Translations under genes and position numbers: made by a program | From: Oopsacas minuta | Lineage: Eukaryota; Animalia; Porifera | DNA: 64,000 nucleotides | Assembly: GCA_024704765.1 (NCBI GenBank) | Contig: JAKMXF010000066.1 | Location: forward strand, 496,001-560,000 | Direction of reading: 5' to 3' | Notes under the pieces: model-generated | The model's database searches: none | What the model was told of the DNA's origin: nothing | The model's input: only the letters and a program-made list of their open reading frames with translations | Shown here: piece after piece, positions 1 to 8,427 of the stretch | Position numbering within the stretch: the stretch's first letter is position 1 | Layout of the letters: each line of letters starts with the position of its first letter

Positions 1-153
1 TGTATAGTTATGGTGGGATGTATTGTCTCGAGACACAATCTTTCGGGTAGAGAGCATTCTGACCTATATTTTCGCAATTTGAGCTTATAAACATCTTAAG
101 CTATATAATTTTCGGATCTAATCTTTATATATTATAGGTTATTGCTATTTGAA

Positions 154-3100
154 ATGTCTAGAATATTCCTGTGTGGCTCTCGTTCAGTAGGAAAGACAAC
201 TCTATGTAAAGATTGGTGTGAATGGAATAAAGAATATGTTCATATTAATGGAAATGACGTCACTAGTGAAGTAATGGATGCAAATAATATTAGTCGTGAT
301 GATATTATTAATTCTTTGAATACAGAAGCTAAAGAGTTATATTACAATCTACAGAAGTATCTTTTTATTGAGCAAAACAAGAGAGAAGAATTGCTAAGTG
401 ATCGATTGTTCATATCTGATAGCGGACCAGATCCTCTTATTTATACTCACAAAGAAAGTAAGGATATGTCTTATAAATTGTATAAGCATGAAGATGTTAC
501 GAATTGCTTCAATCTCTACCGCAAGAGTTTAATAGTTGTAGTAGCTCCTTTAGAAGATGACAGAGAACATAATTCTTATACAAAGGTATTGAGACATGTA
601 TTACAAGAGTGTGGTGTACCTTATATGTACCTGAGAGAGAGGGTTAGATCAAAAAGATTAGAAATACTTAAGATAGCAGCTATTAATGGGTGTGTCCTTA
701 TGCCATTGGATCAGTTAAAAGAACAGCAGTGTCTTGCTTACTACATGGACATAGGAACTGTGAAAAATCGCATATTTTGCTCTCCAATGTCTCTGCAAGA
801 TAATACAGCCTATATTCGTAAATTCATAATATATCCATATGAAATACAATTATCTATTCAATCAATGGACAGTACTAATCGTATGCTAGAGAGATATGGT
901 ATAGGTAATTTTGTATTACTTGAATTCCACTGGAAAGTTAGTGATAATGACATTAAAGATATTCTGGGTATAGGACTATATGTAGATGGTGATGAATACC
1001 AGTTTATAGGTTGTAGCTCAGAGGAATTGAGGAGTAGGACTTGTTACCTTATGAAGGGAGATACTAATTACATTGATGCTGTATTGAGTGAGTGTGGAGA
1101 TTTTTCTGGGGTAAACACGGTTGCTGAGAGGTTGAATAGGATAGGATACCTATTCTCAAAAGGTATAAATACAGGTGTAGCTATTAGCAATGACGAGTTT
1201 GAGGTTATTGAAGATGTCTCAAATGCTGGAAGGATATTCACTGATGGTTGTGGATTAATTGGATTGAATTTAGCTAAGAAATTGGCTATAGGTTCTAATG
1301 TGGGTATAAACTCTCCAGATGATAATATTCCAGGTGTTTTTCAGATCAGATTCCAAGGGTACCAATGTGTTGTTATGAAGGCCCCAAAAGAAAACCAAGA
1401 TTCTTTTCAGTTAAGAAATTCTATGTTGAAATATAATACTGGAACAAAGCCTTTTCCACATATCTGGATCTGCAACCATTCTCGTCCTAATTCATACGGC
1501 AATCTAAACAAACAGTTTATTATGTTACTATCTGGACGAGGGATAAGTGACAAAGTTTTCCTTACAAAACAAGATAGTTATTTCACTGCATTAGAGAATA
1601 TGTTAATCGATCCTAAATTCGCTATTAAACTTCTTAACTGGAAAAACTACACAGAACTAGCCGAAACAGTAGCTGCCTGTCCTTCTACCGAGGATATGCA
1701 ACAGAACAAAGAAATACAAAACAAACTCAAATACCTCAAAAATACACTTGTAGAGAGAATTGACGAATTAGAAATTCCAGTTATTAACTCGCGATATATG
1801 TTTGGTGTCTGTGATCCTAATCAGCTGTTAGAATACGGAGAATGTTTCGTTAGATACACATTGAATGATGAACTAAAAACACTACAGGCAGGAACTTCTG
1901 TGATTGTTGGGAAGAATCCTTGTTATCATCTCGAAGATATTAGAGTTTTAATCACAGTAGATTATCCTGAATTGAATCATTTAGTTGATTGTATTGTATT
2001 TCCTGTAAAAGGTGAGAGACCCCATACATCTGAGATTGCTGGTTCTAGTCTAGGTGAGGACCGGTATTTTGTGTGTTGGGACGATAATCTGATCCCTAAA
2101 GATGTACCAAAACCTTATAAATACCTTGAAATAGAACCTGATCGAGCTCAAAACATATCTCGTGAAAATATCATCGAGTTCTTCGCTGGTTGTATGAATA
2201 ATATGGATATGATTAATTCATATTATCAATATTGGGCAGATAAACTAGGAGCAGGTTGTAGAGCTTGTAGAGATCTGGCTCAGCTGTTATCCAGAGGTGT
2301 AGCTTCTACAACAACAGTTGATAAGTTACCATGTGATCCCAAACCTCACAGAAATAAAAATCTCACATCACACGGTGAAATGGTTTGGCATAAGATGAAG
2401 ATAATAGCTCGTAGTAAAAGGAAGACGTTTACACTAGATACCATTGAAGATGCTCTGGTTAATACATGTTATGTCTCCTCTATTCCAGAAGACTTTATGA
2501 TAAGAATATTGAAGGATAAAGATAGGAGTATTCCTGAATACAAAATACTAATTACCTTATACAAATGGTGTAGGAGACTCAAATTAACTGACATTGAGAT
2601 AATTGATAAATTCATTGAGCTGTCCAGCTTTATAAACTTCGGTATTCTAACACTGAATGAGAGGATTGAAGCTATTAACCATGGCATACCAACTACTCAT
2701 GTAATGAACGCGTTATACAAGTCTAGAATACTCACTACAAAGATGTTACAGTCTCTGAAATTACCTTGTTATGGATGGGAATATTGCTTCAGAGAGAAGA
2801 GTAGTGATTTTGCCTGGAGCGATTTGTCTACTGCTATTACTAGTTTTACTGAATCTTTTATTATTCTTCAACTTGAAGAGTACATTTTAGCTTTCCATAT
2901 TATTGGTACGATTCGACTAGGGGACTCTGTGTTACCGCCTGGAAGCCTGACGTCATATTTATTCTCTGGGGGACAAATGTTCAGATACGTAACAGAATGT
3001 CATTATAATATTAATTTAGCTACAGAAGTAATACAATTTTATATCGAACATAAAGAGAATACATTTCTGTTTATGAAAAGATTCGGCAGAAGTTCTAAGA

Positions 3101-6100
3101 ATGATTTTGAAGGTGTCAAATATGATATTATTAGTATTGAGTTGGATAAATTCAAAACTGAATCCTCTGGAAATTCCAAACATCCTCTAATACGGAAAAA
3201 GAACTTCCAAATGATTGAGGTATTCGTTAAGAATAAATTCCAGCAGGAGATCAGCTGCTCTTTAGATGCCAATTCCCATCCGACAGAGAACGAGCTGGAG
3301 GATCTGCTGAGTGAAGATAAAGACTGTTTCATTGAACTACAAACTCTACCTGATTCACCGTTATTAGCTATGAAGGAATTTGCTTGTAAAGGAGATGGTA
3401 TAGGATTCTCTGGAGTACTACAACATATCAATGTATCTTCTATTAATAGTGTTATATTAATAGAACAATTCCTTATTCTTCTGTCAAATGTTATTGCTAA
3501 AATAGCACATAAATGTAGTTCGGAGTTACATACACAAGCATTGGAAGTCTATTGTAATCCTGGAGATCAAACTATTGAGCAAGAATGTTCGGAATTGCCA
3601 ACACCATCAAGTATCTTCGAAATAGCTAGTACAGTTGATAATCAAGTTATTCATACGATAGGAGATAGCTATCATGATACAAATCCATTCGTTCATGAAG
3701 TAGAGCAGTACACACATGATAAGAAGTATAGTAGTAGAAATAGCGTAAGATTAACGGTACCATTAATAGAGGAAAATGGATCAGATCTAGACGCACAACC
3801 AATGGAGGCTAAGAAATTATCTACAGAGTCACTTATACAGGAAACTGGACCAGAAGAACAAGTATCATCATTGGATAAGTTCAGTGAATCTTTATTAGAA
3901 CCTGTAGCTGAAACACAAACAATTCGTAATGGTACTCAATCATCAGGTCTTGTTGTAAAGGAAGTTAGGTCAGAGATACTAATAGAAATCTCTGATACAG
4001 AAAAAGCACTGGCTACTCCATTTGCCAAGGGAGATCAATCCGAAACACAAACAACTTGCAATGACATCCAATCCTCTAATACTGTTATACAGGAAAATAA
4101 ACCAGCATTACTAATAGAATTGTCTGATACAGAAATTACACCAGATAATACATTTGTACAATCAGATCAACCAAAAATTCAATCAATTTGTAGTGGCGGA
4201 CAACCGTCAGAACCTGTTCTGAAAAATCCACCAAAAATACTTATAGAATTATCAGACACAAAAATTACCGCGGAAGATTTATATATCCAAGCAGCTCAAT
4301 CAGAAACACGAGCAATTTGTAATGATATCCATATCCAATCGTCAGAGCATGTTCTCCAGGAAAATATACCTGACTTACTAATTGAATTATCAGAAACAGA
4401 AATTACACCAGATAATACATTAGTACAGTCAGATCAACCAGAAATTCAATCAATTTGTTGTGAAGAACAACCGTCAGAGCCTGTTCTGGAAAATAAACAA
4501 GAAATACATATGAAATTCTCAGATACGAAAATTACCGCGGATAATTCATATATACAGGCAGATCAATCCGAAACAAAACCAATTTGTAGTGATATCCATA
4601 TCCAATCGTCAGAGCATGTTATACAGGAAAATACACCTTTGTTGCTAATAGATACGTCAGTTTCAGAAATTACACAAGATAATCCAATTATCAACGCTGA
4701 TGAACTAGAAATTCAAGAAACAATACAATCAATGGCAGTGATAGATGATCAACTTGTTAAAGCGACTGAATTACGAGATACATTCAAATCCTTGGAAGAG
4801 ATATTGAATTCTCCTCATATAGAAATAACACAAGCAAGAGATATACTGCTTCTCTACAGTAGTCTCAGCAAATTACATCTTTATGACGTCATCAAACAGC
4901 ATCTTTGCAAGTCAATCGATACAATTGAGATTCCAACAATAGCTCAGTATCTTGACTGTATTTCTAATTGGGAGTTGTGGACATTCCTTCCACTGTCAGT
5001 ATCCAGTCAGCTGTCTAATCAGCTGTTTAAGTTATCTCTTAATCTTGACACTATACATACACCGGATCCTGAACATTTTGATGAAAAAGCTCCGAGTATT
5101 CAGGATTTGTGTATGAAAAGTGGAGTACCTTCATTTGATCAAAACATACTGAATTATTACAGATGTTATTTCTCTCATTTAATACTAAACTCTCTTCTAA
5201 ACGAGTCTATTGTAGAAGAAATGATTGAGAATTCTGATACTACATTGTGTATGTGGAGGATGGTTTATTGTCAAGAAGAAGAACGCCTGGATGATGATGC
5301 TACTGCTAATCCATGTGAAATTAAGAAAAAATGTAAGGCATGCTTCTCTCCAACAAGCAAGATTATGACAGATAAATTCACATTAGGTTCTTATGTCAAA
5401 ATCAGCTTTGTAGCTAGATCTACATCTTCTAACTCGAGTATGCCAATTGCACTAGGCTACATATCAACAGTATCAAATATTCTAGGTCGTATTACAGTAG
5501 AAATATTGGATCCTGTCCCTGATTGCCTAAAGAGAGCAGGTCGACTTGAGGTAGGCATATGGACTCTCACCTTGCTAGACAACATTACTACATTCAAGAA
5601 TTGTACCAAAGCTCTACATAGCTTACACGAGAGTAAGATTATTTCTATATTAATACATCCTAAAGGGTTCCCTCCTCTTCTAGAGATAGCACAAGAACAC
5701 AATTTAGACTATACATCTAAACAATCTCTACCTCCAGAAGAGATAGAAAATGTTTCGCATCCTTATGATGTATTCCCTAACTGTCAGGGTTGTAATAATA
5801 GGATTAGCTTCAATGAGAGACAGGAAAATGCCATCATCTCCGCTCTCGGAGACTCCCTTACTCTGATACAGGGTCTGCCTGGTACTGGTAAGACTGTAGT
5901 AGCAGCAGAGATTGTACATCAGTTACGTCATCTGATTAGACTTAAAGATAGATGTGATACTGCTAAAATGCTAGTTACAGGTGTTACTAATATCACTGTG
6001 GATAATCTCACATATAAACTGTTGGATTTAGGGATGCTAGTGTTGCGTATTGGGGAGACTACCAAAGACCTACGTGAATACTCCTTAGAATATCAGCTGC

Positions 6101-7071
6101 AAATGAAAGGGATAGAACTACAAGAAAATGGAGAGTTTAAAGAAGAAGAAATAATCAATAAAATATTAAAATCAGCTGATATAATCGCTACAACATGTTC
6201 AAGAACAGGAGATAATATTCTGAAGAATATAACATTCCCTTATATACTAATCGACGATGCTACTCAAGTGATAGAACCTATATCATTAATTCCTATAGTC
6301 AAATCTTGTGAGAGGCTTATTCTCATAGGAGACCCACAACAACTAGTACCCAAGTTACCATATGAACCAGAGGGTGTGATTCCTCTAAATGCACTTCGTG
6401 TTACTCTATTCCACAGGTTACATGCTCAAATGGAGCCTCTTTCGCTAGTTGAACAGTATCGTATGCATCCTGCTATAGCTGAATTTCCTTCTAGATTATT
6501 CTATTCTGGGAGATTGAGAACAGCAGTCAGCTGTTTGAATAGAACACCGCCTAATGTTAGGTTCCTCACTAAAGACAGACCTGTTACATTCTGTAATGTA
6601 GAATCAAGAGAAGAGGAAGCTGGAAGTTCTTGGAAGAATACAGGAGAAGCTAATAAAGTTGTAGAGATTATTAAAGAACTGATAGCTACTACAGAATACA
6701 AAGTATCTGATATTGGAGTAATTACACTGTATGTCGGACAAGTTAAATGCATTAAAGATACGCTAGGTAGGATACAAGTAGATGTAGATACTATAGACAG
6801 CTATAGAGGCAGGGAGAAGGAAGTAATTGTATTCAGCACTGTTCGGAACACAAAACACGGAGATATTAGTCTTATAGAAGATTTAAATACAATAAATGTG
6901 TTGTTAACAAGAGGAAGGCGAGCAATAATCGGAGTTGGTAACCCTATGACTCTGTCTAGATCTCATATCTGGAATGAATGGTACTATTTCTATTTTGAAG
7001 GAGACAATGAAGACGATAAACCGCCGCATGATGACGTCACTGAGGCTTCAGATTGGGCATGGGATGCTTGA
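154..7071 (+). CDS. Intronless multidomain protein: N-terminal P-loop (AAA_28/NadR-Ttd14-like) + cellular two-barrel RNA-dependent RNA polymerase domain (catalytically degenerate) + repeat linker + Upf1/DNA2-NAM7-like SF1 helicase
   Basis: ORF 142..7071 with first ATG at 154. P-loop is GSRSVGKTT. RdRP motifs are FTDGCG, FQIRF, KNPCYH and RPH..EIAGSSLGEDRYFVCWD. Helicase motifs are QGLPGTGKT (5869-5895), ILIDDATQ, GDPQQL, QYRMHP, DSYRGREKE and NVLLTRGR. Confidence 0.9.
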   Translation: MSRIFLCGSRSVGKTTLCKDWCEWNKEYVHINGNDVTSEVMDANNISRDDIINSLNTEAKELYYNLQKYLFIEQNKREELLSDRLFISDSGPDPLIYTHKESKDMSYKLYKHEDVTNCFNLYRKSLIVVVAPLEDDREHNSYTKVLRHVLQECGVPYMYLRERVRSKRLEILKIAAINGCVLMPLDQLKEQQCLAYYMDIGTVKNRIFCSPMSLQDNTAYIRKFIIYPYEIQLSIQSMDSTNRMLERYGIGNFVLLEFHWKVSDNDIKDILGIGLYVDGDEYQFIGCSSEELRSRTCYLMKGDTNYIDAVLSECGDFSGVNTVAERLNRIGYLFSKGINTGVAISNDEFEVIEDVSNAGRIFTDGCGLIGLNLAKKLAIGSNVGINSPDDNIPGVFQIRFQGYQCVVMKAPKENQDSFQLRNSMLKYNTGTKPFPHIWICNHSRPNSYGNLNKQFIMLLSGRGISDKVFLTKQDSYFTALENMLIDPKFAIKLLNWKNYTELAETVAACPSTEDMQQNKEIQNKLKYLKNTLVERIDELEIPVINSRYMFGVCDPNQLLEYGECFVRYTLNDELKTLQAGTSVIVGKNPCYHLEDIRVLITVDYPELNHLVDCIVFPVKGERPHTSEIAGSSLGEDRYFVCWDDNLIPKDVPKPYKYLEIEPDRAQNISRENIIEFFAGCMNNMDMINSYYQYWADKLGAGCRACRDLAQLLSRGVASTTTVDKLPCDPKPHRNKNLTSHGEMVWHKMKIIARSKRKTFTLDTIEDALVNTCYVSSIPEDFMIRILKDKDRSIPEYKILITLYKWCRRLKLTDIEIIDKFIELSSFINFGILTLNERIEAINHGIPTTHVMNALYKSRILTTKMLQSLKLPCYGWEYCFREKSSDFAWSDLSTAITSFTESFIILQLEEYILAFHIIGTIRLGDSVLPPGSLTSYLFSGGQMFRYVTECHYNINLATEVIQFYIEHKENTFLFMKRFGRSSKNDFEGVKYDIISIELDKFKTESSGNSKHPLIRKKNFQMIEVFVKNKFQQEISCSLDANSHPTENELEDLLSEDKDCFIELQTLPDSPLLAMKEFACKGDGIGFSGVLQHINVSSINSVILIEQFLILLSNVIAKIAHKCSSELHTQALEVYCNPGDQTIEQECSELPTPSSIFEIASTVDNQVIHTIGDSYHDTNPFVHEVEQYTHDKKYSSRNSVRLTVPLIEENGSDLDAQPMEAKKLSTESLIQETGPEEQVSSLDKFSESLLEPVAETQTIRNGTQSSGLVVKEVRSEILIEISDTEKALATPFAKGDQSETQTTCNDIQSSNTVIQENKPALLIELSDTEITPDNTFVQSDQPKIQSICSGGQPSEPVLKNPPKILIELSDTKITAEDLYIQAAQSETRAICNDIHIQSSEHVLQENIPDLLIELSETEITPDNTLVQSDQPEIQSICCEEQPSEPVLENKQEIHMKFSDTKITADNSYIQADQSETKPICSDIHIQSSEHVIQENTPLLLIDTSVSEITQDNPIINADELEIQETIQSMAVIDDQLVKATELRDTFKSLEEILNSPHIEITQARDILLLYSSLSKLHLYDVIKQHLCKSIDTIEIPTIAQYLDCISNWELWTFLPLSVSSQLSNQLFKLSLNLDTIHTPDPEHFDEKAPSIQDLCMKSGVPSFDQNILNYYRCYFSHLILNSLLNESIVEEMIENSDTTLCMWRMVYCQEEERLDDDATANPCEIKKKCKACFSPTSKIMTDKFTLGSYVKISFVARSTSSNSSMPIALGYISTVSNILGRITVEILDPVPDCLKRAGRLEVGIWTLTLLDNITTFKNCTKALHSLHESKIISILIHPKGFPPLLEIAQEHNLDYTSKQSLPPEEIENVSHPYDVFPNCQGCNNRISFNERQENAIISALGDSLTLIQGLPGTGKTVVAAEIVHQLRHLIRLKDRCDTAKMLVTGVTNITVDNLTYKLLDLGMLVLRIGETTKDLREYSLEYQLQMKGIELQENGEFKEEEIINKILKSADIIATTCSRTGDNILKNITFPYILIDDATQVIEPISLIPIVKSCERLILIGDPQQLVPKLPYEPEGVIPLNALRVTLFHRLHAQMEPLSLVEQYRMHPAIAEFPSRLFYSGRLRTAVSCLNRTPPNVRFLTKDRPVTFCNVESREEEAGSSWKNTGEANKVVEIIKELIATTEYKVSDIGVITLYVGQVKCIKDTLGRIQVDVDTIDSYRGREKEVIVFSTVRNTKHGDISLIEDLNTINVLLTRGRRAIIGVGNPMTLSRSHIWNEWYYFYFEGDNEDDKPPHDDVTEASDWAWDA
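3976..4682 (+). repeat. Coding tandem repeat of 43-46 aa units organised as an 89-aa (267-bp) higher-order dimer
   Basis: Units start LLIE(L/I)SDT; e.g. ttactaatagaattgtctgatacag at 4108 recurs at 4375 (period 267). Unit lengths are 44, 43, 46, 43, 46 plus a partial unit. Confidence 0.85.
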
Positions 7072-7302
7072 AAGGTTAATTTATTGATACCATGTATAAA
7101 TATTTTAATATTTATTAGGTTTGAAAAGTACTTTTTAAATGACAAATAGCTACAGAATTCCATAATAATAATATTCAATTAGTAATTGAATAAATCTTAT
7201 TTATATTTTCTTATAAATAGTCACAGATATTATATGCTAAATAATTATACAAATATTTACAAATTGGGGGAGTTTGTAATCCAAATTAGACAATTATGAG
7301 AG

Positions 7303-8427
7303 CTACATTTGTTCTTCCTTCGCCATTCCCTTCATGAATGGCTCTCTGTTTTTATTTTGAAATTTCCTGACCATTTCATTGACAATTCCATCCTGACTTT
7401 CTGTGAAGTCTGATCTCGTTCTCATCTTTGGATTTTTAATCACGGTTTGTTGTCGCATGTAACAAGGAATATGTTGTAAAGAAGAGGCAATATCTTTGCT
7501 TTCATTTTCCATCAATAGGATATCCCTTTCTCTTGGATCACAGAATTTTATCGAGGACATATTGACATAATTATGATTCATTGCGCTGTTACCCATGATA
7601 GGAGAATGTGGTGCACTCCTACTAAGCCGTATATTATCTGCTGCTGTATATGAGCTAGGCATATTCAGCCTGCAATATTCATTGGAGTCAAAAGCAATTC
7701 TATAATCAATATCATTATCCGTTGCCTGATGTTCGTTATCATAAGTATATGCTCTATCCAGTTTATTTAATCTCCTAGAAGTGAATTGTCCAGTAGATGG
7801 GCTACTTGTATTGATCTTGGTATTATATTGGTGTATACGTTCATAATCTTGTGATTGTGAATAGAAATTCGTGCTTCGTGACTTTTTAAGTTTGCCAGGT
7901 TCGAAATCAAAAGCTTGTTCACATAATGGAGTTACATCTGTGTCGATATAGTTCATAGAACTAGCTACACTCGGATTTGCATTTGTCAAGAGGTCTAAGT
8001 AGAAAGGCATAGTTCTCTCTGTTTGGTTACTAGTAACACAAATCTCCTCTGAATTCTGGATACACCACGTCATGTTTGCAATTTTACTGTGTTTATTGAT
8101 CTCGAATAATTTTACTGTTCTATCCCAGTGTATTTCAATGATAGGTTTTCTTGCTTGATTATACTGAATCTCAGATTCTATATTAGCCATTAATCTTTTC
8201 TTCGAGGAATACAAAGAGCTGTACTCTGATATTTCCTGATCCACATCGTGTTTGACCTTCTGTAATTTCGCGATATCTCTTTTCCACTCCCTCTCTAATT
8301 TATCTATTTCATCGTATAATTGGTTTTGTATATTATTTAGAAGTCTACTAAACTCGATAAACTTATTCTTTACTACATCTCTAGCATTGTCAAAAGGACA
8401 ATACTCTGAATCTGTTCTATACTGCAT
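7303..8427 (-). CDS. Uncharacterised protein: N-terminal coiled coil (TRIM/BBC-like) plus disordered Ser/Asn-rich C-terminus
   Basis: 374-aa ATG ORF. Heptad-rich FIEFSRLLNNIQNQLYDEIDKLEREW segment. No recognisable catalytic motif. Confidence 0.65.
   Translation of the reverse strand: MQYRTDSEYCPFDNARDVVKNKFIEFSRLLNNIQNQLYDEIDKLEREWKRDIAKLQKVKHDVDQEISEYSSLYSSKKRLMANIESEIQYNQARKPIIEIHWDRTVKLFEINKHSKIANMTWCIQNSEEICVTSNQTERTMPFYLDLLTNANPSVASSMNYIDTDVTPLCEQAFDFEPGKLKKSRSTNFYSQSQDYERIHQYNTKINTSSPSTGQFTSRRLNKLDRAYTYDNEHQATDNDIDYRIAFDSNEYCRLNMPSSYTAADNIRLSRSAPHSPIMGNSAMNHNYVNMSSIKFCDPRERDILLMENESKDIASSLQHIPCYMRQQTVIKNPKMRTRSDFTESQDGIVNEMVRKFQNKNREPFMKGMAKEEQM

Follow-up and report, generated by a model that had tools for sequence, protein, structure and literature searches.

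The stretch analyzed here, referred to as the window, comprises 64,000 nucleotides of the glass sponge Oopsacas minuta (assembly GCA_024704765.1, contig JAKMXF010000066.1, positions 496,001 to 560,000). Near its start lies a large intronless gene (154-7071, 2,305 codons plus stop), called P0001 like its product and identical to a gene already called on this contig. Coordinates refer to the window, and P0001 and all of its features lie on the plus strand. In one chain and in this order, the product carries an AAA_28-like P-loop domain, a cellular RNA-dependent RNA polymerase (RdRP) domain, a TLDc-like domain, a disordered linker, and a UPF1-like helicase. The frame is free of stops from 142 to 7071, and the Met at 154, which opens the sequence MSRIFLCG, agrees with the starts of homologues. 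Over the same stretch, the remaining five frames hold 84 to 262 stops, and about 173 stops would be expected from base composition per 2,305 codons. An earlier note, made from the letters of the window, had described degenerate enzymatic motifs in this open reading frame (ORF), namely, GSSLGED, FQIRFQGYQC, DDATQ, YRG, and FISDSGPDP. All five were found where that note had placed them, in one stop-free frame.

One sample was sequenced in three runs, and their contigs (mean depth of ~60-156x) reproduce the region from 1500 to 7400 exactly, except for a C>T substitution at 3990; all motifs agree. Because these contigs match the letters of the window, the motifs are not consensus errors, the outcome that the earlier note had named as fatal to its reading; consensus error at the motifs was thus excluded, with the caveat that the runs are possibly those behind the assembly itself. 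An error of assembly or consensus, or a mis-joined gene model, is also opposed by similar substitutions in three independent assemblies from other species and by the colinearity of P0001 with homologues of 2,000 amino acids (aa). Nothing was found in favor of such an error, and we give it almost no credence. The substitution at 3990 is synonymous (Ile1279), occurs in the contigs of two of the three runs, and lies directly upstream of a tandem array; it may be an allele or a mix-up of repeat copies.

The RdRP domain (PF05183; aa 227-716, 832-2301) was recognized with a Pfam E value of 2.2e-92 and a score of 311 bits, against a cutoff of 23.8, and the RdRP profile matches RDR2 at E 1.7e-110. Structural modeling, which the earlier note had proposed as a check, was carried out for this domain and showed that the fold is retained. 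The AlphaFold2 model reached a predicted local distance difference test (pLDDT) score of 88 and a predicted template modeling (pTM) score of 0.87, and Foldseek matched it with maize RDR2 (TM 0.84, E 1.5e-33) and with QDE-1 (TM 0.7). The double-psi beta-barrel (DPBB) fold and the FTDGCG motif are still present in P0001. The one low-confidence spot of the core is the block with the catalytic loop, where the pLDDT drops locally to 59.

In this catalytic loop, the GSDLDGD of the family reads GSSLGED (2041-2061), with the first Asp replaced by Ser, the second by Gly, the intervening Gly by Glu, and the third Asp kept. The loss of two of the three Asp, as read in the earlier note, was therefore borne out. 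Full-length homologues numbered 120 and spanned sponges, bivalves, a crinoid, amphioxus, a coral, a flatworm, and fungi. The signature G[SG]D[LM]DGD is present in 116 of them and is missing only in P0001 (GSSLGED) and its three closest relatives, P0002 (HYGGD), P0003 (HLDRD), and P0004 (HSDGD), which are together called the dead clade below; the flanking YFVCWD is conserved. Within this clade, no protein has the first Asp, two have lost the second, and all four keep the third. Across the aligned family, the first position is Asp in 113/113 proteins and the second in 115/117, and P0001 does not carry the DxDGD triad. All 117 aligned proteins, the dead clade included, have the third Asp (D636). 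The third Asp of DxDGD is the one most often mutated in experiments.

The departures extend beyond the loop. The first-barrel motif FQIR[YF]xGxKG reads FQIRFQGYQC (1339-1368); the earlier note was right that the motif is degenerate, and the consensus it had quoted, FQIRxGGxKG, has to be corrected. K404 and G405 of this motif, invariant in the other 116 proteins, are changed only in the Oopsacas copy (K404Q and G405C), and the sister proteins lose R399 instead (R399T/V). The RSVDxxKTGD motif has become SRGVASTTTVD (2290-2322; D717A and K720T). The 113 intact proteins share 77 RdRP columns with an identity of 95% or more, which were taken as invariant. The four dead proteins depart from 12 to 19 of these columns (12 in P0001), whereas intact members depart from no more than 7, with a median of 0. 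Judged by these alignments, the motif departures of P0001 are not due to chance.

In QDE-1, cation A is bound by all three Asp and cation B by the first two of them (D1007 and D1009), and each of the substitutions D1007A, D1009A, and D1011A alone leaves no detectable activity (PMC9508822). P0001 shares the fold of QDE-1 and plant RDR2, both two-barrel RdRPs of solved structure, and differs in that the equivalents of D1007 and D1009 are Ser and Gly. Because the QDE-1 mutants at the same Asp are inactive, P0001 most likely no longer synthesizes RNA. It could still be argued that the protein remains a polymerase, in which the third Asp and the new Glu of GSSLGED, or other acidic residues, bind metal for RNA synthesis or nucleotidyl transfer. 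The invariance of D636, which stands side by side with E635 in P0001, would suit such an enzyme, as would the retained DPBB fold and FTDGCG motif. However, loss of either D1007 or D1009 alone kills the activity of QDE-1, in which both residues bind both cations (PMC9508822). In addition, the loop differs across all four species (SLGED, HYGGD, HLDRD, and HSDGD), as expected of an unconstrained rather than a re-engineered site, and two further active-site motifs (FQIR..KG and SVD..KTG) are broken. An active polymerase is thus very improbable.

The four dead proteins form one clade with 100% support, and its sister group (96%) consists of the intact proteins P0006 and P0009. All six genes are flanked by GLMP upstream and by a minus-strand gene of ~330 aa downstream, and the flanking proteins are homologous and follow the same species relationships; a RING gene lies further downstream at the four dead-copy loci. 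The GLMP locus therefore holds a DLDGD-intact gene in two glass sponges and a dead gene in four species, and because a single syntenic locus is shared, the dead genes are positional orthologues of the intact ones. The tree and the locus place a single loss of the active site between two branchings, the one that set the dead clade apart from the P0006/P0009 lineage and the later one that separated Oopsacas from the other three species. The later split is old, since synonymous sites between Oopsacas and the glass sponge spA are saturated (dS of ~1.8-2). The other glass-sponge assemblies were ERZ23490157, ERZ25071281, ERZ25069837, ERZ25072730, and ERZ25072740.

Intact paralogues occupy a second conserved locus (P0012 in Oopsacas, P0013 in spA, P0011 in spB, and P0014 in spC), and spB has a third gene, P0005. 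The DLDGD-intact copy for which the earlier note had suggested a search is thus present in the Oopsacas genome: P0012 lies on JAKMXF010000221.1 of the same assembly and bears the NCBI name "Regulator of nonsense transcripts 1." The downstream neighbor of P0001 in the window (7303-8427, minus strand, 374 aa) has no Pfam domain on record and is 30-42% identical across the six glass-sponge loci.

Selection was assessed on coding sequences that are all intact, both the dead ORFs of the four species (2,082-2,305 codons) and the eleven sequences compared in total. The ratio of nonsynonymous to synonymous rates (dN/dS, omega) was estimated by the Nei-Gojobori method (NG86) with bootstrap intervals, for the dead gene and the intact paralogue in three closely related species (dS of ~0.4, unsaturated). 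Over the whole gene (2,061 codons), omega was 0.283 (0.254-0.320) for the dead gene and 0.143 (0.122-0.165) for the intact paralogue. The corresponding values were 0.269 and 0.079 for the RdRP domain, 0.228 and 0.083 for the helicase, 0.246 and 0.154 for the TLDc-like or middle part, and 0.121 and 0.211 for the P-loop domain. A maximum-likelihood codon model that included Oopsacas (IQ-TREE) gave similar figures for dead versus intact genes in the RdRP domain (0.266 versus 0.075) and the helicase (0.248 versus 0.069), and over both estimates the dead P-loop domain remained at 0.12-0.14. In Tajima relative-rate tests, the dead gene had 258 unique amino acid changes and its intact positional orthologue had 80 (p 6e-23), with the excess in every domain. 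The dead gene is clearly under purifying selection, relaxed about two- to threefold, and the relaxation extends over the entire protein.

Plain pseudogene decay was rejected because of omega (0.25-0.32), the relative rates, and the ORFs intact in four species. The earlier note had regarded a dN/dS near 1 together with absent expression as the sign of such decay and had asked for values per domain; omega was far below 1 in each of them. It had also left two alternatives. A noncatalytic protein kept by selection agrees with the shared loss at one syntenic locus, the intact ORFs, and the omega values. A recently relaxed paralogue does not agree with the data, since the loss predates a saturated split (dS of ~1.8), the gene is the positional orthologue of intact genes in two species, and the Oopsacas copy has evolved no faster than its dead sisters (131 versus 177 unique changes overall). 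Recent paralogue-specific relaxation was accordingly rejected on the clade tree and the relative-rate tests.

The N-terminal P-loop domain (aa 3-163, 154-678) is AAA_28-like and resembles the ribosylnicotinamide kinase domain of NadR. In the four dead proteins, the Walker A motif is kept (GSRSVGKT, 175-198 in P0001), the Arg of EVARD (253-276) and that of ISDRGPD (409-435) are lost, and a deletion has removed the DDGxR segment (site 544-570, aligned to NadR DDGLRSLGS; the NadR alignment covers the family segment DDGVRLVQS). The absence of Arg from the DR motif, noticed earlier in P0001 as FISDSGPDP, is thus common to the clade. The AAA_28 score of P0001 is 25.3 bits, below the cutoff of 27, compared with 61.4 for the intact orthologue P0006 and 33.9 for the paralogue P0012. 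The DDGxR segment is also missing from the polymerase-intact paralogue group (P0010-P0015, including Oopsacas P0012 at L012:3001-9186). Because polymerase-intact paralogues lack it too, its loss is weak evidence of decay, and to judge from these sequences, the catalytic competence of the P-loop domain is doubtful even in the live members.

The C-terminal part (aa 1890-2263, 5794-6948) is a UPF1-like superfamily 1 (SF1) helicase composed of AAA_11 and AAA_12 (Pfam E values of 1.5e-36 and 1.2e-47), and phmmer matched it with yeast Upf1/NAM7 at 5.5e-55. Among helicases of solved structure, UPF1/NAM7 and its relatives SEN1, IGHMBP2, and ZNFX1 come closest. P0001 keeps Walker A (GLPGTGKT, 5872-5895), motifs Ia, III, and IV, and the TRxxR of motif VI. 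It differs from these relatives in motif II, where DE has become DD; in motif V, where Gln has become Arg; and in motif VI, where the first Arg has become Thr. The motif II sequence DEATQ thus reads DDATQ (E2035D, 6253-6267), the FQG of motif V reads YRG (Q2218R, 6802-6810), and the motif VI region xRINVLLTRAK reads NTINVLLTRGRR (R2246T, 6886-6921), so that the first conserved Arg is lost. E2035 is Glu in 105/109 aligned members, and Q2218 is Gln in 105/107. The sister proteins keep DEATQ, FQG, and the motif VI Arg, and these three changes, together with three milder ones, make six departures at near-invariant positions that are found only in Oopsacas.

P0001 therefore lacks the motif II Glu, the motif V Gln, and the full set of motif VI arginines (DDATQ, YRG, and NTINV..TRGRR). 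The residues of motifs II, V, and VI have catalytic roles in SF1 helicases. Because all three motifs are altered, ATP hydrolysis by the Oopsacas helicase is probably weak or absent; for an SF1 protein of this kind, binding of nucleotide and RNA with little hydrolysis would be expected. The earlier note had correctly read DDATQ and YRG, both of which proved private to Oopsacas. Its broader statement, that the active sites of all three modules had decayed, held for the RdRP and P-loop domains, in which the changes are old and clade-wide. It has to be qualified for the helicase, where the changes are confined to Oopsacas and partly conservative (E to D), and for the DDGxR segment, which is also missing from a polymerase-intact paralogue. 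A joint decay of the three modules was rejected, as the helicase is changed only in Oopsacas. To the degenerate elements already listed, R2246T in motif VI, the Arg of EVARD, the DDGxR deletion, and the RSVDxxKTG motif can be added.

The converse arrangement was also observed among the homologues. P0052, P0096, P0099, and P0050 keep the polymerase DLDGD and have a broken motif II, which takes the forms DAATE, DKASQ (in two Coleophoma fungi), and EEAEQ. All four have also lost the motif VI Arg, and the motif II Glu itself is replaced in three of them. This pairing suggests a joint loss of ATPase function.

Between the polymerase and the helicase, Pfam assigned no family to aa 717-1110 of P0001 or to the corresponding stretch of P0012, although matches with E <= 1 were admitted. 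The AlphaFold model of aa 775-1075 had a pLDDT of 84 and matched the TLDc domains of NCOA7 and OXR2 in Foldseek (E 1.7e-5, TMt 0.6-0.7); over NCOA7, OXR2, and TBC1D24, the matches ranged from E 1.7e-5 to 8e-4 and from TMt 0.54 to 0.71. The beta-sandwich domain at 2776-3243 is named only TLDc-like because no sequence profile supports TLDc. It contains a loop, FLFMKRFGRSSKNDFEGVKYDIISIEL (aa 971-997, 3064-3144), that is conserved within the dead clade only, far better among the dead proteins than in comparisons of dead with intact genes. Identity between Oopsacas and spA is 51% overall and rises to 78% over residues 951-1000. The conservation of the loop hints at a clade-specific function.

The linker that follows (aa 1151-1550, 3604-4803) is acidic, rich in Ser, Thr, and Gln, and mostly without an aligned counterpart in the intact paralogues. 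It harbors a tandem array (4028-4716) with periods of 129 and 267 nucleotides, in which a unit of 43 or 89 aa has been amplified in Oopsacas. An LLIELSDTE-like core, hydrophobic at first and then acidic or Ser-containing, recurs in the array in five strict copies and a weaker sixth. The sister proteins carry a single unit of this kind (ILEITDTK) along with three NPF motifs, and Oopsacas has one NPF (3679-3690). We take the LLIELSDTE-like cores to be candidate SUMO-interaction motifs (SIMs), which they resemble, and any role of the linker motifs is speculative. For the conserved region before the helicase (4954-5793, aa 1601-1880), no Pfam match was obtained in a search with aa 1560-1885.

As reported previously, a fusion of RdRP and AAA_12 helicase was noted in the amphioxus protein BL02069 (Pinzon et al. 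2019, PMC6396948). Here, the fusion of RdRP with AAA_11/AAA_12 was found to be widespread, with members in animals (amphioxus, bivalve, coral, and demosponge homologues) and in fungi (Trichoderma/Fusarium). These proteins have the domain order of P0001 and are homologous to it over the whole length, with E values down to 1e-297, and the sponge and bivalve members also share its N-terminal AAA_28-like P-loop domain. The difference lies in the catalytic signature: the other 116 members keep G[SG]D[LM]DGD, whereas the dead clade is without it, has evolved about three times faster, and has gained the long acidic linker. P0079, a protein of the crinoid Anneissia japonica, has GSDLDGD at two places (aa 484 and 1270); it is a double RdRP in tandem or else a fused gene model.

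The closest precedent for a functional RdRP that is noncanonical or possibly dead is Rdr3 of the ciliate Paramecium tetraurelia, which has a divergent catalytic domain, exists beside canonical RdRPs, and is required for transgene-induced and endogenous small interfering RNAs and for surface-antigen exclusion (Marker et al. 2010, PMC2896523). Unlike P0001, Rdr3 has no helicase, P-loop, or TLDc fusion, and it still has three Asp, at altered spacing, and may be active or dead. P0001 retains a single Asp of the three, and a tree with syntenic intact orthologues allows the loss to be dated. Pseudoenzymes such as pseudokinases, and inactive copies that regulate their active paralogues, are likewise homologous to active enzymes, have lost catalytic residues, are under purifying selection, and exist beside active paralogues. 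P0001 differs from typical cases in that up to three enzymatic modules of one Oopsacas chain look impaired. The literature searched yielded no description of an animal cellular RdRP that is both dead and conserved.

P0001 combines homology to active enzymes, the absence of catalytic residues, and purifying selection, and its clade can be classed as a pseudoenzyme derived from a known enzyme family. We consider it probable that P0001 is the Oopsacas member of a small glass-sponge clade of retained pseudo-polymerases that acts as a nonpolymerizing binder or regulator. Here, we infer the loss of activity from homology to the QDE-1 mutants, and the role in binding RNA or partners from the conservation of the rest of the protein despite the lost catalysis. 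In this reading, the gene goes back to an active P-loop/RdRP/TLDc-like/UPF1-like-helicase gene that stood at the GLMP locus. The ancestor shared by Oopsacas and the three related species lost the first metal-binding Asp of DxDGD, and in the same lineage, further active-site motifs degenerated, as did the arginines of the kinase-like domain. The catalytic loop then drifted freely until no two of the four species shared its sequence, while relaxed purifying selection held the fold, the frame of more than 2,000 codons, and most structural residues, and working paralogues persisted.

The dead protein probably works by binding RNA, through the polymerase cleft and the helicase, or by binding partners, and it could be a noncatalytic subunit, a regulator, or a competitor in the pathway of its intact paralogues. 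The clade-specific TLDc-like loop and the new acidic linker are candidate partner surfaces. In Oopsacas only, the helicase may act as a nucleotide-dependent RNA clamp rather than a motor. A more specific version, which we regard as possible and rather doubtful, is that the dead clade is a neofunctionalized noncatalytic RNA sensor or regulator. In such a protein, the polymerase cleft, joined in Oopsacas by the ATPase-impaired helicase, would only grip RNA, and the basic TLDc-like loop and the linker repeats with their NPF and SIM-like motifs would have retargeted it.

Several points weigh against a retained pseudo-polymerase. With the third Asp kept and Glu and Asp adjacent, a crippled or altered metal site is conceivable. 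The species identities of the three sister genomes come from gene trees only, and one of these genomes is labeled a metagenome. The literature search found no biochemistry on the fusion family, activity assays included. A single search of sequencing runs for expression turned up no RNA run; all those it returned were of unrecorded kind and probably DNA. Finally, a second organism's run holds a relative that is ~92% identical, and in two segments compared with this relative, omega was ~0.9 (9 synonymous and 30 nonsynonymous differences), which would fit a recent relaxation in the Oopsacas lineage. This value rests on the 39 differences listed (aa 692-771 and 1092-1174; 2209-2469 and 3427-3675), with a further 197 outside the listing, and these 39 are too few to decide on extra relaxation at the Oopsacas tip. 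A protein-fragment search for the relative with aa 1690-1990 of P0001 returned nothing at E <= 1e-20.

The high omega is the main evidence that the Oopsacas copy is dying, that is, that the pseudo-polymerase of the clade is functional and that Oopsacas has lately lost the remaining function and is on the way to a pseudogene. The six private helicase departures at near-invariant positions and the lack of an RNA run point in the same direction. However, both high-omega segments belong to the least conserved parts of the protein, and 2,305 codons are open where composition predicts ~173 stops. Unique changes are fewer in Oopsacas than in the sisters, in the helicase as well (35 versus 42). All three indels that separate P0001 from the ~92% relative within the ORF are in frame, and of the six that lie directly after the stop, four have a length that is not divisible by three. 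This contrast argues that the reading frame is still protected in the Oopsacas lineage. A dying Oopsacas copy is, in our judgment, unlikely.

We know of no established function for the cellular RdRPs of animals outside the nematodes. The retained pseudo-polymerase clade offers a natural experiment, as the gene at a single locus has an intact active site in two glass sponges and is dead but long retained in four, where intact paralogues accompany it. Part of the selection on these proteins would then be independent of RNA synthesis, and the matched live and dead proteins (P0006/P0009 and P0012 versus P0001-P0004) could serve to find the noncatalytic role. In practice, glass sponges are not experimentally tractable, and recombinant protein would be needed. 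Under the doubtful sensor or regulator version, the simultaneous ancestral loss of the kinase-like Arg and the polymerase Asp would further imply that the P-loop and polymerase domains form one coupled catalytic unit in the intact family. In general, with this finding, cellular RdRPs would join the enzyme families that include conserved pseudoenzymes.

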